A program made the position numbers and the translations under genes. The notes under the pieces were generated by a model that ran no database searches, was not told the origin of the DNA, and worked only from the letters and a program-made list of their open reading frames with translations. Of a stretch of 64,000 bases of DNA, positions 6,189 to 61,643 are shown in pieces. This DNA comes from Bugula neritina (taxonomy: Eukaryota > Animalia > Bryozoa): assembly GCA_964035545.1 (NCBI GenBank), contig OZ037769.1, positions 5,871,929 to 5,935,928 on the forward strand. The letters run 5' to 3'. Position 1 is the stretch's first letter. The number at the start of each line of letters is the position of its first letter.

Positions 6189-19430
<13,242 letters not shown>

Positions 19431-50598: not shown

Positions 50599-51326
50599 AT
50601 GGTAATGTCGACTAGTCGAAAAGAAATAATATCACAAAGTGCAGTGCTGGCCAACTACCATACAATCAGTACTTTAGCCAAGTCTATTCGAGCACCATGC
50701 AAACCAAGGTAGTCGATGGACATATACTTTGATGTATCATAATATACTTTGACACTTCTCTTTCTTTCTTTATATTTCTTAATTTTACTTCAGCATGCTT
50801 GTTTTTGCACATATCCTCAATAACATCTTGATCAATAAATTTTCAATAACGTCTTAAATCATTTTATCACTGCTGAGCATAATTTTTGTCTTTGAAATAA
50901 TTTTTTTATGTTATTGACTAACATTCACAAATAACAGACTTGCTCAAGCATGTAACTGTGCTAACTTGGAGAAGCAGTAACTTTAAAAGTTCACATAATT
51001 ATATCTCTTTTAGTTCAACAACAAAAGATACAGTGGAGTTGTATTCTCCAGACACAGCCACAACAAGATTTAGACGCAAGTATTCCACTAAAGACATTCA
51101 AAAAATAACTGATAGGGTAGCCACGCCCACAGGAAGTAGATTTTCACGCAGACATAATTGTACACCTGCCAACCAATTATCTACTGACCGATATGGTGTG
51201 CCACCACACCTGTGGGGTCGGCAGAAACCGGCTAGCAGACAGCTGATAGAAAGGTTAATTCGGCCGACAACAACACATAGTCAAAGAACAGCTCTCACAT
51301 TGAGACAGCATCGGTCAAAAAGCTGA
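50599..51326 (+). CDS. Small basic protein with repeated [IL]xxR[LV]xxPT motifs (putative microtubule/axoneme-associated)
   Basis: Exons 50599-50708 and 51014-51326 join in phase 2: MVMSTSRKEIISQSAVLANYHTISTLAKSIRAPCKPSSTTKDTVELYSPDTATTRFRRKYSTKDIQKITDRVATPT...LIERLIRPTTTHSQR... The true start may lie upstream (acceptor at 50567). Confidence 0.65.
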
Positions 51327-51716: not shown

Positions 51717-54544
51717 TTATACACACTTGCAACTGGTGATAGTTTGAAGTTGCCCTACTCTAATAACCCCATCCCTACCTTCATATAGCATATTCAGTGG
51801 TTGTTTGCTTGCTGGAATGCACGCAGTTCCAGTGTCTTCACTGTTCAGTTTAAGCAACATTTCTTGTCTTAATATGCTCTGTGAAGGTAGCATAGCCCGT
51901 TCCATGGAGCTCATAGTTTTTAGGCTACAGCTTCCTTCACAATAATTAGCTGTATATCTTTGAGGGTGTATTATCCAGTGCCACCCTAATGTCTCAAAGT
52001 CCACAGTTAATGATTTTAGGCAACAGTTGCCCATGCATCTGTCTGTAGGTTTGTAAGAGACGGTCACGACTTTTGGAAGTTGTGTTTCCATTGGTTCAAG
52101 AGAAAGAATAACGTCTTTAGAATGATGAGTCATTTTACTCTTAAAACGAATTTGCACTTTGAACTGAACGCTGCTATCATTGTTCAGCATCAGAGAGCTC
52201 GTAAATTGTTTCTTTGGTAGTCTCACTTTATACCACCCACCAGATAAGAGGGCAGTCTGAGCTCTGCCCATATACACTCTCTGCCTCTTATAGATAAGAT
52301 CTAAATCCACCCAGTGCTGCCGATATAAGCCTACGCTTTTCTTATGTCTTGCAGATGAATTAGAGTTGGTACTGTTATAGAGGTAGAGGGAAATTCTTTT
52401 AGCATTCATCACATGTTTGTAGGGCAGCACAAAACTGGCCCTGAGTGACTGATGGCCGAACTCAGCTACAAGTAATGACATGATATAGTATATAATTATT
52501 TTTATTTGTTTTTAATTATTATAAGCTATTGAATCAAAATAATATCTTAAAATTTCCATGCTACAACTGCATTCTGTCTAGAGTCTAGACCCATAAGTCT
52601 AGAATACCAAAGAATGAGCAACTTTGCACCCCAAGTCATGCCTTGTCAAACTGACACTGTTGCTATATTACTAATACTATCATAATGCACATAATTATCA
52701 CATTACGGAAATAATATTTGATATATATCAATAAATTGGTTAAAATTTTGATTTCTTATATTTTTAAACATGGCATCTTCATAGCAAAGTTTTATTTTCA
52801 GTTCATATTATGAATATGCCTAATTAAAACTAATCCCGGTCAAGTTGTTCAAATATACAGGTAATTTAAAAAAGTTAAATGGATAGAAAAATATACAAAC
52901 TTAGGTTCATTTTTAAAAAAAATAGTTATAATTTAGTTCTTCACTTCATAGCTATGATCTAAGCCCTAAGGTTATTATCTAAAGTCATATTTTTTATAGA
53001 TTCTTTAGATGCAACTAGAGACATGATCTACTATATACTCAACAGTAATAGATTATTTCAAAATAACATGGATTCCTACAATGTTACTAAAACAGCCTTC
53101 TTGGGGAAAGCCAAAATTTTACCCCTTAAAATTAATTCATAATAGTCGGGCAGTAGAGCATAAATTGTTTATAACCGCTGAAAGCCTAATTTAGGCTTCA
53201 AAAAGTTCATTGCTTTTTATAATAAAGGGTTTTACAAATATAATATGAGAAAATAATTGGAGATAATATGATGATTTTCAGTATTGGCAGCAATTAGAGG
53301 CTGCAGCAGCAAATACTTTTGTTGATTGATGTTGGCAAAATCAATCTAAAATCACCTGGCAGCAGATTACTAGTTGTTTATCTAAAGACCTGAGAACTGA
53401 AGTATAAATGTCAGCAATCAAAAGTGAGTTCCCCAAATGTACTATCTGTATATCATTTCTACAGTTCTACAAATGTATTATATGTATCAATAATTTCAGT
53501 TCTACAACCATACATGTGCAAAATATAGACTATTAATAAAGGTTTGTTCAACATCCAGCAGTGTGTGTACGTACGACAGTAGCTAATCTACGTAAGTTCA
53601 ATCTTTCAATGGTACTGTCTAATTACTCACTCTAAATATTGTTTTTTGAGTGAAGAAATACATCATTTAATGCAAATGTATTACAGATACTTTACATGTA
53701 CTAGTGTGTCATATAATATTTTATACATTTTTTTGATGTGTTGTAGTAGCTATCAGAAACTTGTATATTTCATGTCATTTAAATTCTTCAGCCATTTACT
53801 AATGCAAAAGCCTTGCTTGTATTTAACCCGTATTGTATACTAATATACTGGCTACTGATAAATTCTATTTATGTGTCAAAGCAAACTCGCCATCCCTGCC
53901 ATCCCTGCAAGAAACCCTTGATAAAAATAGTCTTTTTGGTTAGACTGTCCTAAGGACAATTATTCAGATGGGGCATAGGAGCAGTTAGAGCTGGATGCTC
54001 TTCCTAACATCACCAATGGCCTTTGTTGGGGCTCGAAGCCATGACCCTGGATTTACTAAGTTAGTGCTCTAACCCCTAGACCACAGCTGCTCCCTCTACT
54101 TATGTATTATAACATAATTATGTTAAATAATATATAATGTTGAATCTGCTTTGCTTTAATTACATGCTGACTTATACTATATATGGTTGCTATCTTCACA
54201 AAAATGCAAATCAAGAATTGCGTTATAATAACGCATCCACATAATTTTGATCTTGAAGTGTTTTGGTGTAAAACGTCTTTCCATTGAGTAAAACTAAGGA
54301 TAAAAATATACAAACGGCAGCAAAGTTTACCTGTGTCAGCGAGATATAGACTGGTATTCTTATGGCTGTGCTGCAGAAGTTTTGATGTATGGAACCAGTG
54401 ATCACCTGCAGGAAGAGTAGATTTGTGTCCACTTGTAGTCTGGAATTTTCTATCATCTGCTACTACTAAGCAAAAACTATGCAGAAAATAAAGATATGAA
54501 ACAAACACAATAACCTGTGTATTAGCTTCAAATAACCAATTCAT
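51717..54544 (-). CDS. Divergent activin/myostatin-class TGF-beta family ligand (lacks inter-chain Cys and furin site)
   Basis: Exon 1, 54544-54331 (signal peptide MNWLFEANTQVIVFVSYLYFLHSFCLVVA), splices in phase 1 to exon 2, 52465-51717. Cystine-knot domain C..CC.....DF..LGW.WII.P..Y.ANYC.G.C...AC-IP...L..LY...CKC. Confidence 0.9.
53888..54094 (-). mobile_element. tRNA-derived SINE in the intron of the divergent TGF-beta gene
   Basis: Reverse complement reads GGGAGCAGCTGTGGTCTAGGGGTTAGAGC..GGCTTCGAGCCC..CAAAGGCCATTGGTGATGTTAGGAAGAGCATCCAG..CAGGGATGG. Confidence 0.9.
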
Positions 54545-56236
54545 TGCAAATACAGTGCAGTATATGAAAAATCATTCCCCTCTGAGCTGGCTGCAGTGTG
54601 GCGCACTTCTGCCCAATTATTCATTCGGACTCATCATTTCTAATGACTTTATAATTATTAGCTGTTGTTGATCTCATCTCAAATATGTCAGACATTTAAT
54701 TAAGGGTTTTATTACTCATTGGGTCAGCATTGTCTTGCTATGCTCTCCATTAAGGAGTTGTCTGCTATATGTTTTTATTCTGTTTGCTTTACAGAACATA
54801 ATATTCCATGTCGTAATTCAAAAAGTTAAAGCCTGGCTTAGATCCTTATTTTTAGCTTTAACCTATAATTGTTCATATATTCAATTATCCTCATACTTGA
54901 GCTTAGATATTTCGAAGCACTACAAAATAAATTGAAAGCTAAAAATATTTTAAAACTTGTCTATTGTTATAATAAGAACGTCTTTTAAAACAATATTTTA
55001 AATGTTTTAGTCATGTATATTAGCAGTCATACTTGTAATAAGAACCTAATAGCTGATATGAGTAGTTTAGATAATTGAGAGTTATCTTCTCTCTGAGAGA
55101 ATCTACAAGGCTATATCACTTGATATTTGCGTTATCAATCAGTATAGTGACATTTTAACTACTACCGAAGTGTTCTCTGAAGACTATATAGACAAATGTT
55201 GCTTTTATTTTTACATCATCTAAAAAATAGAAAAAAAATTTGCGTGTAGTGTATACAATATTGCAAAACATGTTTACAATATATTTATTTTTATATTCTA
55301 TACTTTCGAATGCTTATATGCTAAATATAAAGATAATAATAACTGCGGCTATTTATAGCACTTCATTGCATAGAGGAGATTGTATATTAGGAGCTCACAT
55401 TACTATTACTGTTGGCTATTGGCTGTGCTACAGGGGATGAGATTGAAACATTAATTTGCAGTATTACTTTCAATAAACTGTGGATAAGCCTGGGCTTTAA
55501 TTTTCAATTTAAATGATATTTTAAGAGTTTTCTGCTCACTAATCATGAAAATGGACCATAAATGTGCTGAGTAGAAAAGTCATATGGCGAGACTAACTAA
55601 CCACAAAGGGTACCCACTTTTTGTACTCCTATAACTCTAAAAAGTATACTGTTTTAACTCTGCAAATGATACATCTGTTTTGAATTTTCAAATTTTGTTA
55701 GCCACTATTTTTGTACCCAAAATCCATCAAAACTTTACTTTAAGTTCAGAATTGACCAGGTTAACATGGTATATACAATGAAGTCTATAAATAAAAGTGA
55801 AATAATATTGTTGTTTAGATAATTACATCTTTTCTTCAGGTAGGCTACACTATAAAGATTTTATTTTGCTGGTTTGGAAAGCTTTATTCTTTGAAACTGT
55901 TATAATTCTTTTATTATTCATAAATTGTAATGAAAAACCTTCGATAGATATAAGATATTCATTGTGAATAAGTGCGGTCAGGTGCAACTTGGAGTTGTCT
56001 CTTCTCTGAGATAAACCCTAACCTTCTAGCAGACTACATACTATCAAAATGCAATTACACAGCTTTGTAACTGATCTCAGTGGTTTAAAATAAACAAGAT
56101 GGATAAGCTGTTTATTTTCCTATTCGGCATCAGTGCTCTGGCCTTGTTTTTTAGAACTATCCAAAACAAATACAGCAAAGAGTTGATGTAGCTTATGAAA
56201 ATATGAAAGGAATGAAGTAAAAACTTTAAAGAAAGC

Positions 56237-56275
56237 TGATTGGTTGATATTTACCTCTGTAGTATATATAAAGCA
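56237..56275 (+). promoter_or_regulatory. CCAAT box (reverse) plus TATA box of the myostatin-like gene
   Basis: TGATTGG at 56237-56243 and TATATATAAAG at ~56263-56273, about 110 nt upstream of the ATG at 56379. Confidence 0.6.
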
Positions 56276-56378
56276 GAAGCAGAGAGAAAATGACTAATTT
56301 GGATTTTGCAGTATAACTTGGCTCACACTAAACACAGGTTTTTACAGATTGTAAAACCATTGATTGCTTGATCTCAAA

Positions 56379-59300
56379 ATGCATCTCATAGGCAAACTCT
56401 CGTATTTTCTTGCAATATTGACTATTTTAATACAGCTTATAGGTTCTGCAACATCAGAACAAAAAAGTCAGTCATTAAGTGGACTTTTAAATATAATAAA
56501 AATGTCATCAGGCCATGGAGAGCCTACAGTAAATAAAAATGGACAGCGATCTACTAAAAATCTGTATATGACATCACGTCTTGGCAGTGCGTCCACTCGA
56601 ACTCCGAACTCTGATGACGACCTTGAGACTGATTCTGACAGCAGTGGAGGCTCCAGCAGTGAAACTGATCTCCCAGATCCTATTTTCTTAGCCAAAAGTC
56701 AAATTCACACTCAAATACAAACTGCGCAAGATAGAGAAACCACACACTTAGAGATGCAGGAATTCCGGAAAGAGGAAATAAAGCATTTGTTGCTTCAAAA
56801 GCTGCAGCTAGACCGACTACCAAAGCCTAACATGACTAATCTATATCGCCGATTTCCAGCTCACTTACTGCGGCACCAAAATGAAGGGCTACAGATGGAT
56901 GCCCCAGCAAGAACAGACAACTACCACATTAAAATTCAGCGAATGATCCGATTCTCTCAACAAAGTAAGTTTCATTTAATCATTATAAAGCAATACAGGT
57001 CAAATTTTAGATAGTGTTGACTTTAGAGAAATATTCAATTAATTTCAAGTGCATAAGATTTTGAGAATAGATATAATCACCAATTCACTATGTAAGCGAC
57101 TGTAAATGCACTAGTTGAGGTCATGTTGGCAACACTGCAGAGTTGCCAGTACAAGTTGCTGATGCACAAGATACTGCGTAAACAGTAATGGACTGCACCT
57201 ACCAGGTGAAAGCCCATTGTTAAACAACTGAATATGCTTCACAGTTAAATAAACTTTAGCACTTGAATTTGTCATATTGAAAACATAAAGCTTTATCTGA
57301 ACTCAAGGTAGATTTTCGTGAACCTGAAAAAATTGTTGATGGTTACCAATCAATTGATTAAACATTGGTGCAAAAAGGGATTGCACTAACAGAGGTTTCT
57401 AACAGCTGTCGTTGCATATTGTACTTAAATTTCATTTTAGTTTAATTTGATTTATTCTGTTTGACCAGATTAACATAAAAAATATGGTAATAAGAAAGCA
57501 AATAAATATAAAAAACAGACTGTTAGTGATAGAAAAAGCGTCACTACACCAGTACAAGGCTCATTGAACTTACAGTGCCACTTTCCGTCTTTTTCATCAT
57601 GCAGATATACAAAACTATCGCACTAAAGTTAAAAACTTTCTAAAAATAAGACTCATGCACAGCAGCCTAGCACAGATTTGATCACCACAGTCTTTTTGTA
57701 GCTTTGTCTAAAGTCACACATTCATTTTAGGGGTTTGAAAAGGATCATTTGCAACTTTTGGCTTCACTGACTTAATACAATTGATCAGATAGCATCATTG
57801 CATAGAATTGTATGGACCTTGTAATAAGATAAATGCTTTATACAGGAACAGCTGGAAGGCGTATTTGCCAAATGAAAGCATACGTGTTGTTACCCCATGA
57901 GACTAAACTCTGTGCTTGTGCAATGCATGCATTGCCATTATACTAAAACACATTTCTAGTCAGCAGTAGTAGTCTCTGCAGAATATAAACTTGCTTAAAC
58001 TCTCCGCAGACTTCCTACGTATCTCTAACGGGAAACTAAACTTAACCTAATTCTAAAGAAGATGTTGAGCAACATGCACTTTGATTAGTTAGAGTTGATG
58101 CCAAGGTCACTGAAGGCCACACAGCTGCTGAATATCTAGATATTTATACTTTAAAATAAGAATCAACTGATGATTTTAAATTAGAAAAACTAGTTGAGGC
58201 AAACTTCCGGGAATGCAAAAATAATAAAGAAACTTTCAAAATAGCATTTCTAAATTCTTAGCTAAAGTTTTGTTTTGTTTTTAGTGTAAAACATTTTCCA
58301 AAGTAAAATGCTTGAAGTATTTTACAATGTTATTGTAAAGTGCTATTTGTGACAGTGTTATTTGCAAAAGTTGGCCTTTTTTAAGATGTAAATTAAATAT
58401 GTTCATTCACAACTCATCAATAAGCATCATATTTTCTCTTGTAAAAAATTTGAATTCATTTGACCTCAAATGTTTATATTGAAAATACAACTATTCTTTT
58501 TAGCAATATACAAGCAGCATTTCTGAGAAGATTTGGCATGGTATTATAAGCAGGTTCAAAGTCAACATTACTTGCATATTTTAAATAAAGCAAGTACCAT
58601 AGCTGTGTACTTTAGTGCGTAAAAAATGCTAAGTTCACTTTCTTATCGCTGCCTTTACACGAATTGAATAGAAGTCATTGCATAGCTAAGGCCACTAAGC
58701 CAATAATAGTTTGGTGTCTTCCTTAGTGAGGAAAGTGAATATGTCATTTGCTTTGCAGCTAGGCCTTCAAATTAACGCGTGGGGAGACCGAGCACCCAAT
58801 CTAAATTTGAAAGCACTAGTTAGAACCACTACTCTATAACTTGAATATTTAAGTAAACTCTGAAAATGTTAAATATTGCTTTCAATTAAATATATTCAAG
58901 GCACTATAAAGCTAAAAGGTATTTTGATATTTAGTAAAAATTGTCAATTTGACCATAGGAAAACCAGCAAATATCGATTAATTAACTGTTTACTTAAAGT
59001 ACAAGTAAACAGTTTACATATCGCAGAAGTTCTAAGCACTATAAAATTAACAAACATTGCTAAATGGCCTATTTTATTGCAGCCTGCAACTTGCAGTAAA
59101 TATATTTCATGCTTTATCTAGAATTTTGCTGACAAAACATTTATATGACTAACCAGTAACTTAGCCAACTTTGTAGCGTATCACTAGTTGAGATAGTAGC
59201 GTCTATCGTCTATCGGTTGGTAAAATGTCGATAAAAAGTTATTGGAAGGAATGAAAGTGTCTGCAGTGGGGGTGAAGTAACTGTTTGTTTTGTCTAGCCT

Positions 59301-61643
59301 AGCCAGAACCATCATGTCAAATTACTTTAAATGGCTGGCTGAAACATTGCATCTACTCAGCATAAAATGGAATAACGCTGCAAGATTTAGAGACTCTTTT
59401 GATGCAATCAATACCAATAGTTAATTATAGAGAGAAAATTTTCTGATTATAGAATTGATTATAGTAGGCAGTGTCTTGTTTGAGCAAATAATTACAGTAA
59501 TGGACTATGCAAGAAAACTCAGTATCTTGCAGCCTTTTGCAAGAATGTAGCCCTAGACGAAAAACCTATCAGTGTATCGAGTCAATACCAGCTACTTCCT
59601 CATCTTAGACATTAGAACTAGGGTTATTTGACAGTTACTATGCCAACCAGTAGTGATGCTATAGAAGTATTATGATATCATGTAAACTCACTCTAACTGA
59701 AAACAAATATGCCAACATTTCGAAGTGCATTAACTGAAGAAGCTCAAATAAATACAGCGGTCACATTCTTTACTTAAAATATTATCAAAAACGAAGGTGT
59801 GCAGTCGTGTGTGGGGGCTAAATGAGGTATTTTGTTGCGCAGAGAACAAGCACTACTGCATATTAAAATGTAATGAATATTTTGGGGTATTTTATCGGGC
59901 AGGTGTAATGTAGAAATTGGGTAATAAGTGTGTTTATCTGGATGCATATTAGAAGCACTGTTGTATTAACATAACCTCCTACAGCTTATGTTTACATTAC
60001 TCAACTGAGTGGCTTTCAATTATTTATTAGTTACTCATTATAATAGGTCATTCATTGTTTTTAAAATTCTGTTTCATTTTCATTGTTAATGCTAGTTTAA
60101 CCTTTTCAATTGTGACATGAGTGCTAGAAGTGTAAAGTGATTTGTTATGATAATTTTGTCATCATTTAGCAGGTTGTTTAGCTGTTATTGTATGTATTTA
60201 TATATTCCATGCAGTTTTGAACTAACTTTTTAACTTCAATAATAACCTGAACTTAATTACTTTGTATTAAGGCAATCTGATTGGGCAAGGCAACAGATTT
60301 GCTAATGATAAATTTAGCTACTATTGCCAGCAAGTCATGCAAATAATTTGATTGTATGGAATAGGTCCCCTAAACAGGTGTCTTTGGCCTACCCAATATG
60401 GGAAGTTTGTACTTGAAATCAATTCCAAGTTAGTAAAAAGAGTATTGCAAGCTACTGGCACTACTTTTACAATATTAAAAAGTTCAGCCATTGCCTGCGG
60501 AAGCTTCTAATTTCGAATATAATAGGATACAGTGAAATATCAATGGTGATCATAAAAATCACATCTTTGTCAGATTAACTGTAAAGTGATGTTGTTTTTA
60601 GTGCCCAGTGAAAAGGCAGCGCAGGTAGCTGATTCAGATTCAACTATGTACTTCCCAATGCCGTTCTCCGTGGACAGAAGCAGCATAAAGAAAGCAACGC
60701 TGTTGGTGTACGTGGAGGAGCCAGAGTGGTACAACAACGAGCTTCTGACTCTGAGAGTTCTCAGTAACCGACTCAACAAATACATCGCCAGTCAGCATTT
60801 TCGTCTGAAACAGGGAAGCCAGTGGCAGCACGTAGACATCACAGAGGAAAGCCAGAGTTGGGTTGACCATGAGTGGACGAACAACCTAGGTCTGGTGGCG
60901 GAGGTCATGTTGAATGGTGTTAACCTAGTCAATTATAACAGCAGCATAAAACCAACAAATGAAACAATTTCACGAGTAAGTCAGCCCTGAATATTGTGTA
61001 TCAGCTTGCTCATTGCATAACTTTTATCAGATAACAGTTGTTTGTGATGTTGCAGTTTTTGTGTAAGAGTTGGCTAGATTAATATTCAGAATTAACCGTG
61101 CATGCAAAATATAAGAATCGTTATTGTTGTTATTGTATGTGGGCAATAGAGTTGAAAATTAAGTGTGCTAATTAACTTGCACCCAATATGAACTACCCTG
61201 ATTTATTTACAATGCCAAATTTCTCATTGAGATTTTTAATATAATTTTAGTTGCCACTAGTCAAACTAGAGATCAATGCGGCTCATCACCAGCGACAGAA
61301 GAGGTCTTCGTCTTCAGATCTTCCTCTGGCATGTTCCCCAGAAGATCAGGAAAAAAGATGCTGTAAATATCGTTTTGTTATTGATTTCGATACTATGGGA
61401 TCAGATTATGATTTTATTGTTGTCCCTAGAAGATATTATGCAAACTACTGCAAGGGCACGTGTCCCAAATACCATATTCCAGCTAACCCACATTACCAAC
61501 TAACACTGAATGTGAAGACAACTCAGCGATGCTGTGCCCCGTCGGAATATTCATCTCTCAACATTATCTTCTACCATGAGAACGGGTCCATGTATGAGGG
61601 GGACCTGCCTGGCATGTCAATATCAGCTTGCAGTTGCGGCTGA
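56379..61643 (+). CDS. MSTN: Myostatin/GDF8-11-like TGF-beta family precursor
   Basis: Exons 56379-56964, 60602-60975, 61251-61643 (intron phases 1 and 0). Signal peptide; latency helix EFRKEEIKHLLLQKLQLDRLPKPN; QMD..DNYH segment matching the tolloid-site region of myostatin; furin site RQKR; 9-Cys mature domain with CC..P.RY.ANYC.G.CP...CCAP...CSC. The symbol denotes family-level similarity, not proven orthology. Confidence 0.88.

Follow-up and report, generated by a model that had tools for sequence, protein, structure and literature searches.

A head-to-head pair of TGF-beta genes in Bugula neritina includes a member of a bryozoan subclade with no canonical furin site and mostly no inter-chain cysteine

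Ligand-derived antagonists of the Smad2/3 branch of TGF-beta signalling, such as Lefty, inhibin and Panda, have been characterised mainly in deuterostomes. Lefty is furin-processed. GDF3/Vg1 has no inter-chain cysteine, and GDF3/Vg1, GDF9 and BMP15 act non-covalently or as heterodimers. Myostatin and GDF11 signal through ActRII and Babo/ALK4-5 to Smad2/3, and in vertebrates they are encoded in three exons. A proline at the knuckle marks Lefty, Panda and inhibin-alpha, and Panda antagonises ACVRII (PMC11239237). A divergent W-x-x-W has been reported for Panda, Maverick and sea-urchin Myostatin-like C; the first and last of these, together with a lancelet inhibin-alpha-like protein, are invertebrate precedents for a divergent W-x-x-W and for loss of the dimer (inter-chain) cysteine (PMC11239237). 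Activin, Dawdle, Maverick and Inhibin-beta a/b carry a CxxC in the prodomain (PMC7017013). Pro-activin A and pro-myostatin are unable to signal while uncleaved, and the forearm of myostatin occludes the type II receptor site (PMC4932183, 10.1101/153403). The variant Activin-M108A acts as an antagonist at type II receptors (PMC2387221). The subject of this report is a pair of TGF-beta genes in a stretch of Bugula neritina DNA of 64,000 nucleotides (contig OZ037769.1, positions 5,871,929 to 5,935,928), referred to as the window. The genes are arranged head to head with start codons at 54544 (minus strand) and 56379 (plus strand), and both are spliced and transcribed.

The minus-strand gene has two exons, a phase-1 intron and a product of 320 amino acids. 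As a preliminary description of the window had stated, it keeps the GWHW finger motif and has no furin site, latency helix or dimer cysteine. Alanine is found at the dimer position, and neither an RxxR nor a dibasic site occurs in the 28 residues preceding the first mature cysteine. The prodomain CxxC is absent and the knuckle residue is asparagine, like that of myostatin. The AlphaFold model of exon 2 had a predicted local distance difference test score of 89-97 across the mature domain and resembled the arm-plus-growth-factor structures of pro-TGF-beta, pro-myostatin and pro-activin. The main tree was built from mature domains (56 rows, 119 columns, no named Lefty among the rows), and a larger quick tree was also built. 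In the main tree the minus-strand gene fell in clade B (18 rows, support 100/100) and within it in subclade B' (9 rows, 99/89). The plus-strand gene belonged to clade A (5 rows, 100/99), which was sister to the MSTN/GDF11 group (97/81); in the larger quick tree it was nested inside MSTN/GDF11.

On the sequences compared, subclade B' is the real feature of interest at this locus. A canonical RX[KR]R furin site was present in none of its nine sequences (0/9) and the dimer cysteine was missing in 8/9, while most basal clade B members retain both. The prodomain CxxC was found in all basal B rows and in 2/9 B' rows. The Watersipora subatra protein XP_067931226 falls in B' and its annotated N-terminus is likewise short. 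It has a proline at the knuckle, where the minus-strand protein of the window has asparagine. No forearm was recognisable in B' where exon 1 is known (Bugula and Watersipora). The remaining B' members were taken as bryozoan by sequence similarity. Homolog searches were run exon by exon; a word-indexed search with exon 2 of the minus-strand gene gave only the near-identical P0001, and an exhaustive search recovered the orthologs. The downstream neighbouring open reading frame (ORF) of the window is common to P0004 at 49% identity.

The minus-strand gene is under strong purifying selection. The ratio of nonsynonymous to synonymous substitution rates (dN/dS) of exon 2 against a related Bugula contig was 0.066 (37 synonymous and 10 nonsynonymous changes, Fisher p 2e-17), with values of 0.048 in the mature part and 0.086 in the pro part. 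This same contig, from a Joint Genome Institute metagenome (L038), has a 10-nucleotide deletion at 388-398 that ends the frame in exon 2. RNA contigs across this exon are gap-free, and the deletion is therefore explained by misassembly or by a rare allele. The RNA evidence comprises contigs from four runs whose RNA origin was either recorded or guessed, and gives whole-sample presence, neither levels nor cell-level co-expression. Exon 2 of the minus-strand gene and exon 1 of the plus-strand gene were covered by contigs of all four runs. The minus-strand intron was crossed exactly by one contig (run X3), joining 52464 to 54331, and contigs of plus-strand exon 1 terminated at the donor at 56964. 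The contigs were 93-97% identical to the window and so derive from a related type. Both mature domains passed Pfam PF00019, at 65.5 and 71.8 bits (cut-off 27; E 8.5e-18 and 9e-20). The best PDB matches of both proteins were GDF8/GDF11. AlphaFold gave a confident cystine-knot domain for each, Foldseek matches agreed with the TGF-beta ligand superfamily and an ESM Atlas search returned generic TGF-beta clusters only. The start codons, Pfam matches and RNA contigs bear out the earlier account of two TGF-beta genes diverging from a 1.8-kb spacer. The spacer is a candidate for a shared bidirectional promoter.

Subclade B' is like Lefty in having no dimer cysteine and as a candidate Smad2/3-branch antagonist. 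Unlike Lefty, it keeps the activin-class CC pair, eight cysteines and a longer wrist, and the minus-strand protein has asparagine rather than proline at the knuckle, a short beta6-beta7 loop and no furin site. The minus-strand protein differs from inhibin-alpha, a betaglycan binder, in the absence of the dimer cysteine and the knuckle proline. The Bugula member of the Panda/Maverick/GDF15 group is another locus (C1:34.79 Mb), and B' is also without a cleavage site and forearm. GDF3/Vg1, GDF9 and BMP15 share with B' the absence of the inter-chain cysteine, but they are BMP-class ligands with 6-7 cysteines and retained furin sites. The minus-strand gene lies outside MSTN/GDF11, given its separate clade B, two exons, missing furin site and alanine at the dimer position. 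Clade B is unlike activin/inhibin-beta and Dawdle in that its finger-2 tip is remodelled and its tree placement with activins is indecisive; B' further differs from activin/inhibin-beta in having no furin site, mostly no dimer cysteine and often no CxxC. Neither placing clade B with clade A (p-AU 0.442) nor placing it with the activin-like grade (p-AU 0.417) was rejected by the approximately unbiased (AU) test. A canonical activin was not found in the Bugula genome by PF00019 and profile search. Clade B is favoured as the putative bryozoan activin lineage by its layout of two exons, by the CxxC in the prodomain of basal members and by this absence of another activin; alternatively it would be a bryozoan branch of old origin next to clade A. 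The minus-strand gene may have a role analogous to that of inhibin, Panda or Lefty; it does not carry their tested defining features and is not classed with them.

Judged by gene linkage, an old cluster joins clade A and clade B genes in bryozoans, and the locus represents one copy of it. On Bugula C4, two clade A genes (A1 and A2) are followed about 21 kb downstream by a clade B gene, all on one strand. In another species (L031) an intact clade B gene (P0008/P0155, with CC, RRSKR and CxxC) is found on the same strand as a clade A gene and 3.4 kb upstream of it. Exon 2 of this clade A gene is closest to that of the plus-strand gene of the window (49/115 compared with 33-37/108; 40% identity in a separate comparison), although in the main tree the mature domain of this gene falls with the C4 copies. 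The ortholog of the C4 clade B gene (P0013) sits elsewhere in the same sample, with a shared neighbour, and it is therefore fair to propose P0008 as a candidate for the intact state that preceded B'. The placement of P0008 differs between trees, with B' (91) in the larger quick tree and in an unsupported position in the main tree. P0013 is inverted relative to the neighbouring gene shared with Bugula C4 (L056/L035 compared with C4:20.95 Mb), so the orientation of B genes can change inside their locus. The three A-B loci have three orientations; the cluster is therefore old and the head-to-head layout local. Thus synteny recurs for the linkage of the two gene types, and the head-to-head arrangement itself is absent from the other two loci. 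No Watersipora clade A gene was found by a mixed-profile search and metagenome scan, and none lies within 10 kb of P0006. The remaining B' contigs do not reach far enough upstream for a linkage reading.

The minus-strand protein can be described as a conserved, selected ligand without dimer cysteine, furin site or forearm, which plausibly modulates signalling. It is tentatively proposed, at a little under an even chance, to be a non-covalent modulator, left unprocessed, which works by occupying type II receptors or as a dominant negative. The protein would be secreted largely unprocessed, as a non-covalent chain. The lack of a forearm would leave its type II receptor knuckle unshielded. The absent dimer cysteine, the tethered arm and a polar residue equivalent to activin A M108 would lead to poor type I receptor recruitment and a poor signalling hexamer. 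Signalling of the activin/myostatin branch would be damped via type II receptor occupation, by the protein either on its own or in a pair with a clade A or B chain. In this the protein would act like inhibin, Panda or Activin-M108A without belonging to those families.

Several observations weigh against this proposal. The knuckle residue is asparagine, not proline, and both tryptophans are retained. Partial basic sites are present in three B' orthologs (AKR, QKR and RQHRR). A search for a CFC co-receptor was empty, and was run without a positive control. On the side of the proposal, 21/21 clade B rows have a non-aliphatic residue five positions ahead of the final CxC, where 68/68 other ligands have an aliphatic one (methionine in 59). 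The polar state is, however, also found in furin- and cysteine-intact B ligands, which are probably the only activin-like agonists of the genome, and it may reflect a one-residue register shift. Because of this possible shift and the sharing with agonist-looking B ligands, the M108 signal lends the proposal little weight. A more far-reaching reading, of lower probability, is that cheilostomes independently evolved a dedicated antagonist of the activin/myostatin branch from their own activin-class gene by stepwise loss of furin site, forearm and dimer cysteine. The intact state would survive as P0008 (L031), next to the myostatin-type gene of another bryozoan, and the antagonist would be co-expressed with the neighbouring myostatin-type ligand from the shared spacer.

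The minus-strand protein could instead be an independent agonist, a non-covalent homodimer like those of GDF9 and BMP15 that is opened by a protease other than furin or, having no forearm, needs no cleavage, its linkage to the plus-strand gene being inherited cluster history. The retained tryptophan pair and myostatin-like knuckle asparagine fit this, as do the lower dN/dS of the mature domain relative to the pro part, the variable A-B orientation and the loss of the forearm in the C7 paralog P0172 (L010 type), whose furin site and cysteines are intact. However, uncleaved activin and myostatin precursors are inactive, and three activating features were lost jointly with the loss conserved in B', which makes an agonist rather improbable. 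Recurrent A-B linkage and the presence of both transcripts in the same four runs are in keeping with an obligate heterodimer partner of the Vg1/GDF3-Nodal type, secreted and active only with the plus-strand protein or another A or B chain and boosting or redirecting its signal. Vg1/GDF3 act in this way, but Vg1 requires its own cleavage site (PMC5745085) and the minus-strand protein has none. A heterodimer in which one chain cannot be cleaved would be expected to act rather as a dominant negative, and an obligate partner is considered unlikely.

The preliminary description had proposed that inverted duplication of a myostatin-like gene produced a co-regulated pair with complementary losses. 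The head-to-head layout across the 1.8-kb spacer, the shared GDF8/GDF11 matches and the non-rejection of A and B as sister clades are compatible with such an origin, but the two genes themselves as sisters were rejected (p-AU 0.0017). Their mature domains share 28/90 residues (31%), below their identity to GDF11 (31/92 and 36/93). No DNA similarity between the genes was found by blastn and a repeat search at the locus found no inverted-duplication arms. The exon layouts differ and the other A-B loci are tandem. The derivation from a myostatin-like gene holds for the plus-strand gene and not for the minus-strand gene, which is in the separate clade B. The GSDYDF motif is present in the plus-strand gene where W-x-W was expected, but it had been counted as a loss. 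It represents a two-residue insertion plus W to Y and W to F changes; both aromatics remain, so the motif is not a loss. The pattern G-[SEK]-[DE]-[YF]-[DE]-F is common to 5/5 clade A ligands, including the two C4 paralogs with an intact clade B gene nearby. A loss peculiar to this gene pair was rejected, as the motif is clade-wide, and the complementary losses fall with it. Inverted duplication is thus very improbable. Decay of a duplicate is scarcely tenable for the minus-strand gene despite its multiple feature losses and the frame-ending deletion in L038, with pseudogene status rejected by dN/dS and the gap-free RNA contigs over exon 2, and with open orthologs in several species including Watersipora.

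By its tree position and motifs the plus-strand gene is a divergent myostatin/GDF11 member. It has three exons, GT-AG introns in phase 1 and phase 0 and a product of 450 amino acids. As in myostatin, GDF11 and myoglianin, the second intron lies just before the P-x-x-K/E-L strand. It also resembles myostatin/GDF11 in its latency helix, tolloid-like site, furin site, nine cysteines and lack of a prodomain CxxC. The latency helix, RQKR and nine cysteines noted earlier were all located in exons 1 and 3; the exon 1 motifs were read in the light of established myostatin biology. It is unlike myostatin/GDF11 in the replacement of W-x-W together with a two-residue insertion (all five bryozoan members), a long branch and three Bugula copies. 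The residue at the M108 position is aliphatic in 5/5 clade A ligands and methionine in 4/5. The two tryptophans make up the pocket for the type I receptor (PMC8718839), and an altered receptor preference of clade A is therefore plausible; loss of signalling does not follow. The plus-strand protein would be a Smad2/3 ligand of the ordinary kind, latent, processed by furin and linked by a disulfide, and its type I pocket would be remodelled yet aromatic. The features of the locus are collected in Table 1.

Table 1. Positions of features at the locus, numbered within the window
Feature	Position	Strand	Remarks
Minus-strand gene, exon 1	54544-54331	-	Signal-peptide-like hydrophobic start (by eye); short pro-segment without latency helix or lasso
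Minus-strand gene, intron	52466-54330	-	GT-AG, phase 1, 1,865 nucleotides
Minus-strand gene, exon 2	52465-51717	-	Prodomain arm and mature cystine-knot domain; mature Cys1 at 52037-52035
GWHW finger motif	51975-51986	-	Both Trp retained
Ala at inter-chain (dimer) Cys position, TACIP	51824-51822	-	8 mature Cys
Gln five residues ahead of final CxC	51744-51746	-	Met in others; activin A M108 position by counting, register uncertain
Divergent spacer	54545-56378		1,834 nucleotides; TATA-like stretch near 56265; RNA contigs of plus-strand gene start at about 56334
Plus-strand gene, exon 1	56379-56964	+	Signal-peptide-like start; latency helix-lasso RKEEIK...LPKPN 56766-56831; tolloid-site-like QMD...DNYH segment
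Plus-strand gene, exon 2	60602-60975	+	Prodomain arm; PF00688 E 7.6e-4, under curated cut-off
Plus-strand gene, exon 3	61251-61643	+	Mature domain with 9 Cys; RQKR 61293-61304; dimer Cys 61530-61532
GSDYDF motif	61398-61415	+	In place of W-x-W finger motif
ORF tail-to-tail with minus-strand gene	50922-51323	+	Same position in L029 at 49%; no Pfam match

A short interspersed repeat was present at 53960-54090 inside the minus-strand intron, and contig depth over it was very high in each of the four runs. It is presumably, by its appearance, a tRNA-derived SINE. A mucin-like open frame with Thr/Ser-rich tandem repeats and no Pfam match was found at 9465-10130 of the window.

A PF00019 and profile search of the Bugula genome gave three clade A genes, five intact clade B genes and two partial C7 copies of clade B, as well as one Maverick/GDF15-like gene and several very divergent ligands. 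Other genes were labelled by motif and are taken to be BMP2/4, two ADMP-like, BMP5-8-like and BMP3-like genes. Two paralogs of this genome match clusters containing proteins that NCBI assigns to B. neritina (KAF6018374, KAF6033892), so the source is this species or one of its cryptic types. A clade B cluster is located at C7:2960111-2980535 (L010, L012, L015 and L049), with two minus-strand genes head to head with one plus-strand gene and the two further partial copies, in which the match is split across frames. L015 in this cluster is independently without the dimer cysteine and a canonical furin site. The cluster is flanked on both sides by galactosyltransferase-like exons, apparently duplicated (by eye). 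The Maverick/Panda/GDF15-like ligand L013 (C1:34788187-34788900) has GLPDH in place of W-x-W and histidine at the dimer cysteine position, and groups with GDF15 in the larger quick tree (99, Shimodaira-Hasegawa-like approximate likelihood ratio test). L046 and L047 (C5:12623349 and C9:6199382) are very divergent, near-identical TGF-beta-like copies on different chromosomes with intron-split mature domains. L048 (C4:1509043 region) is a tandem pair of very divergent TGF-beta-like genes whose mature domains are also intron-split.

The literature, of which coverage was incomplete, yielded no report of bryozoan activin/myostatin ligands, of the B' subfamily or of a ligand that has lost cleavage site, forearm and cysteine together. 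The proteins stand in public annotation as unnamed entries. The complementary head-to-head module was unsupported, which lessens the surprise of the locus. The turnover described for bryozoan BMP-pathway genes (PMC13121700) is extended to the activin/myostatin branch. B' and its intact relatives form a natural series for the change from agonist to modulator, and for whether an unprocessed TGF-beta ligand can act. If cheilostomes did evolve a dedicated antagonist independently, the minus-strand protein would represent an uncleaved ligand-trap design undescribed for Lefty, inhibin or Panda.

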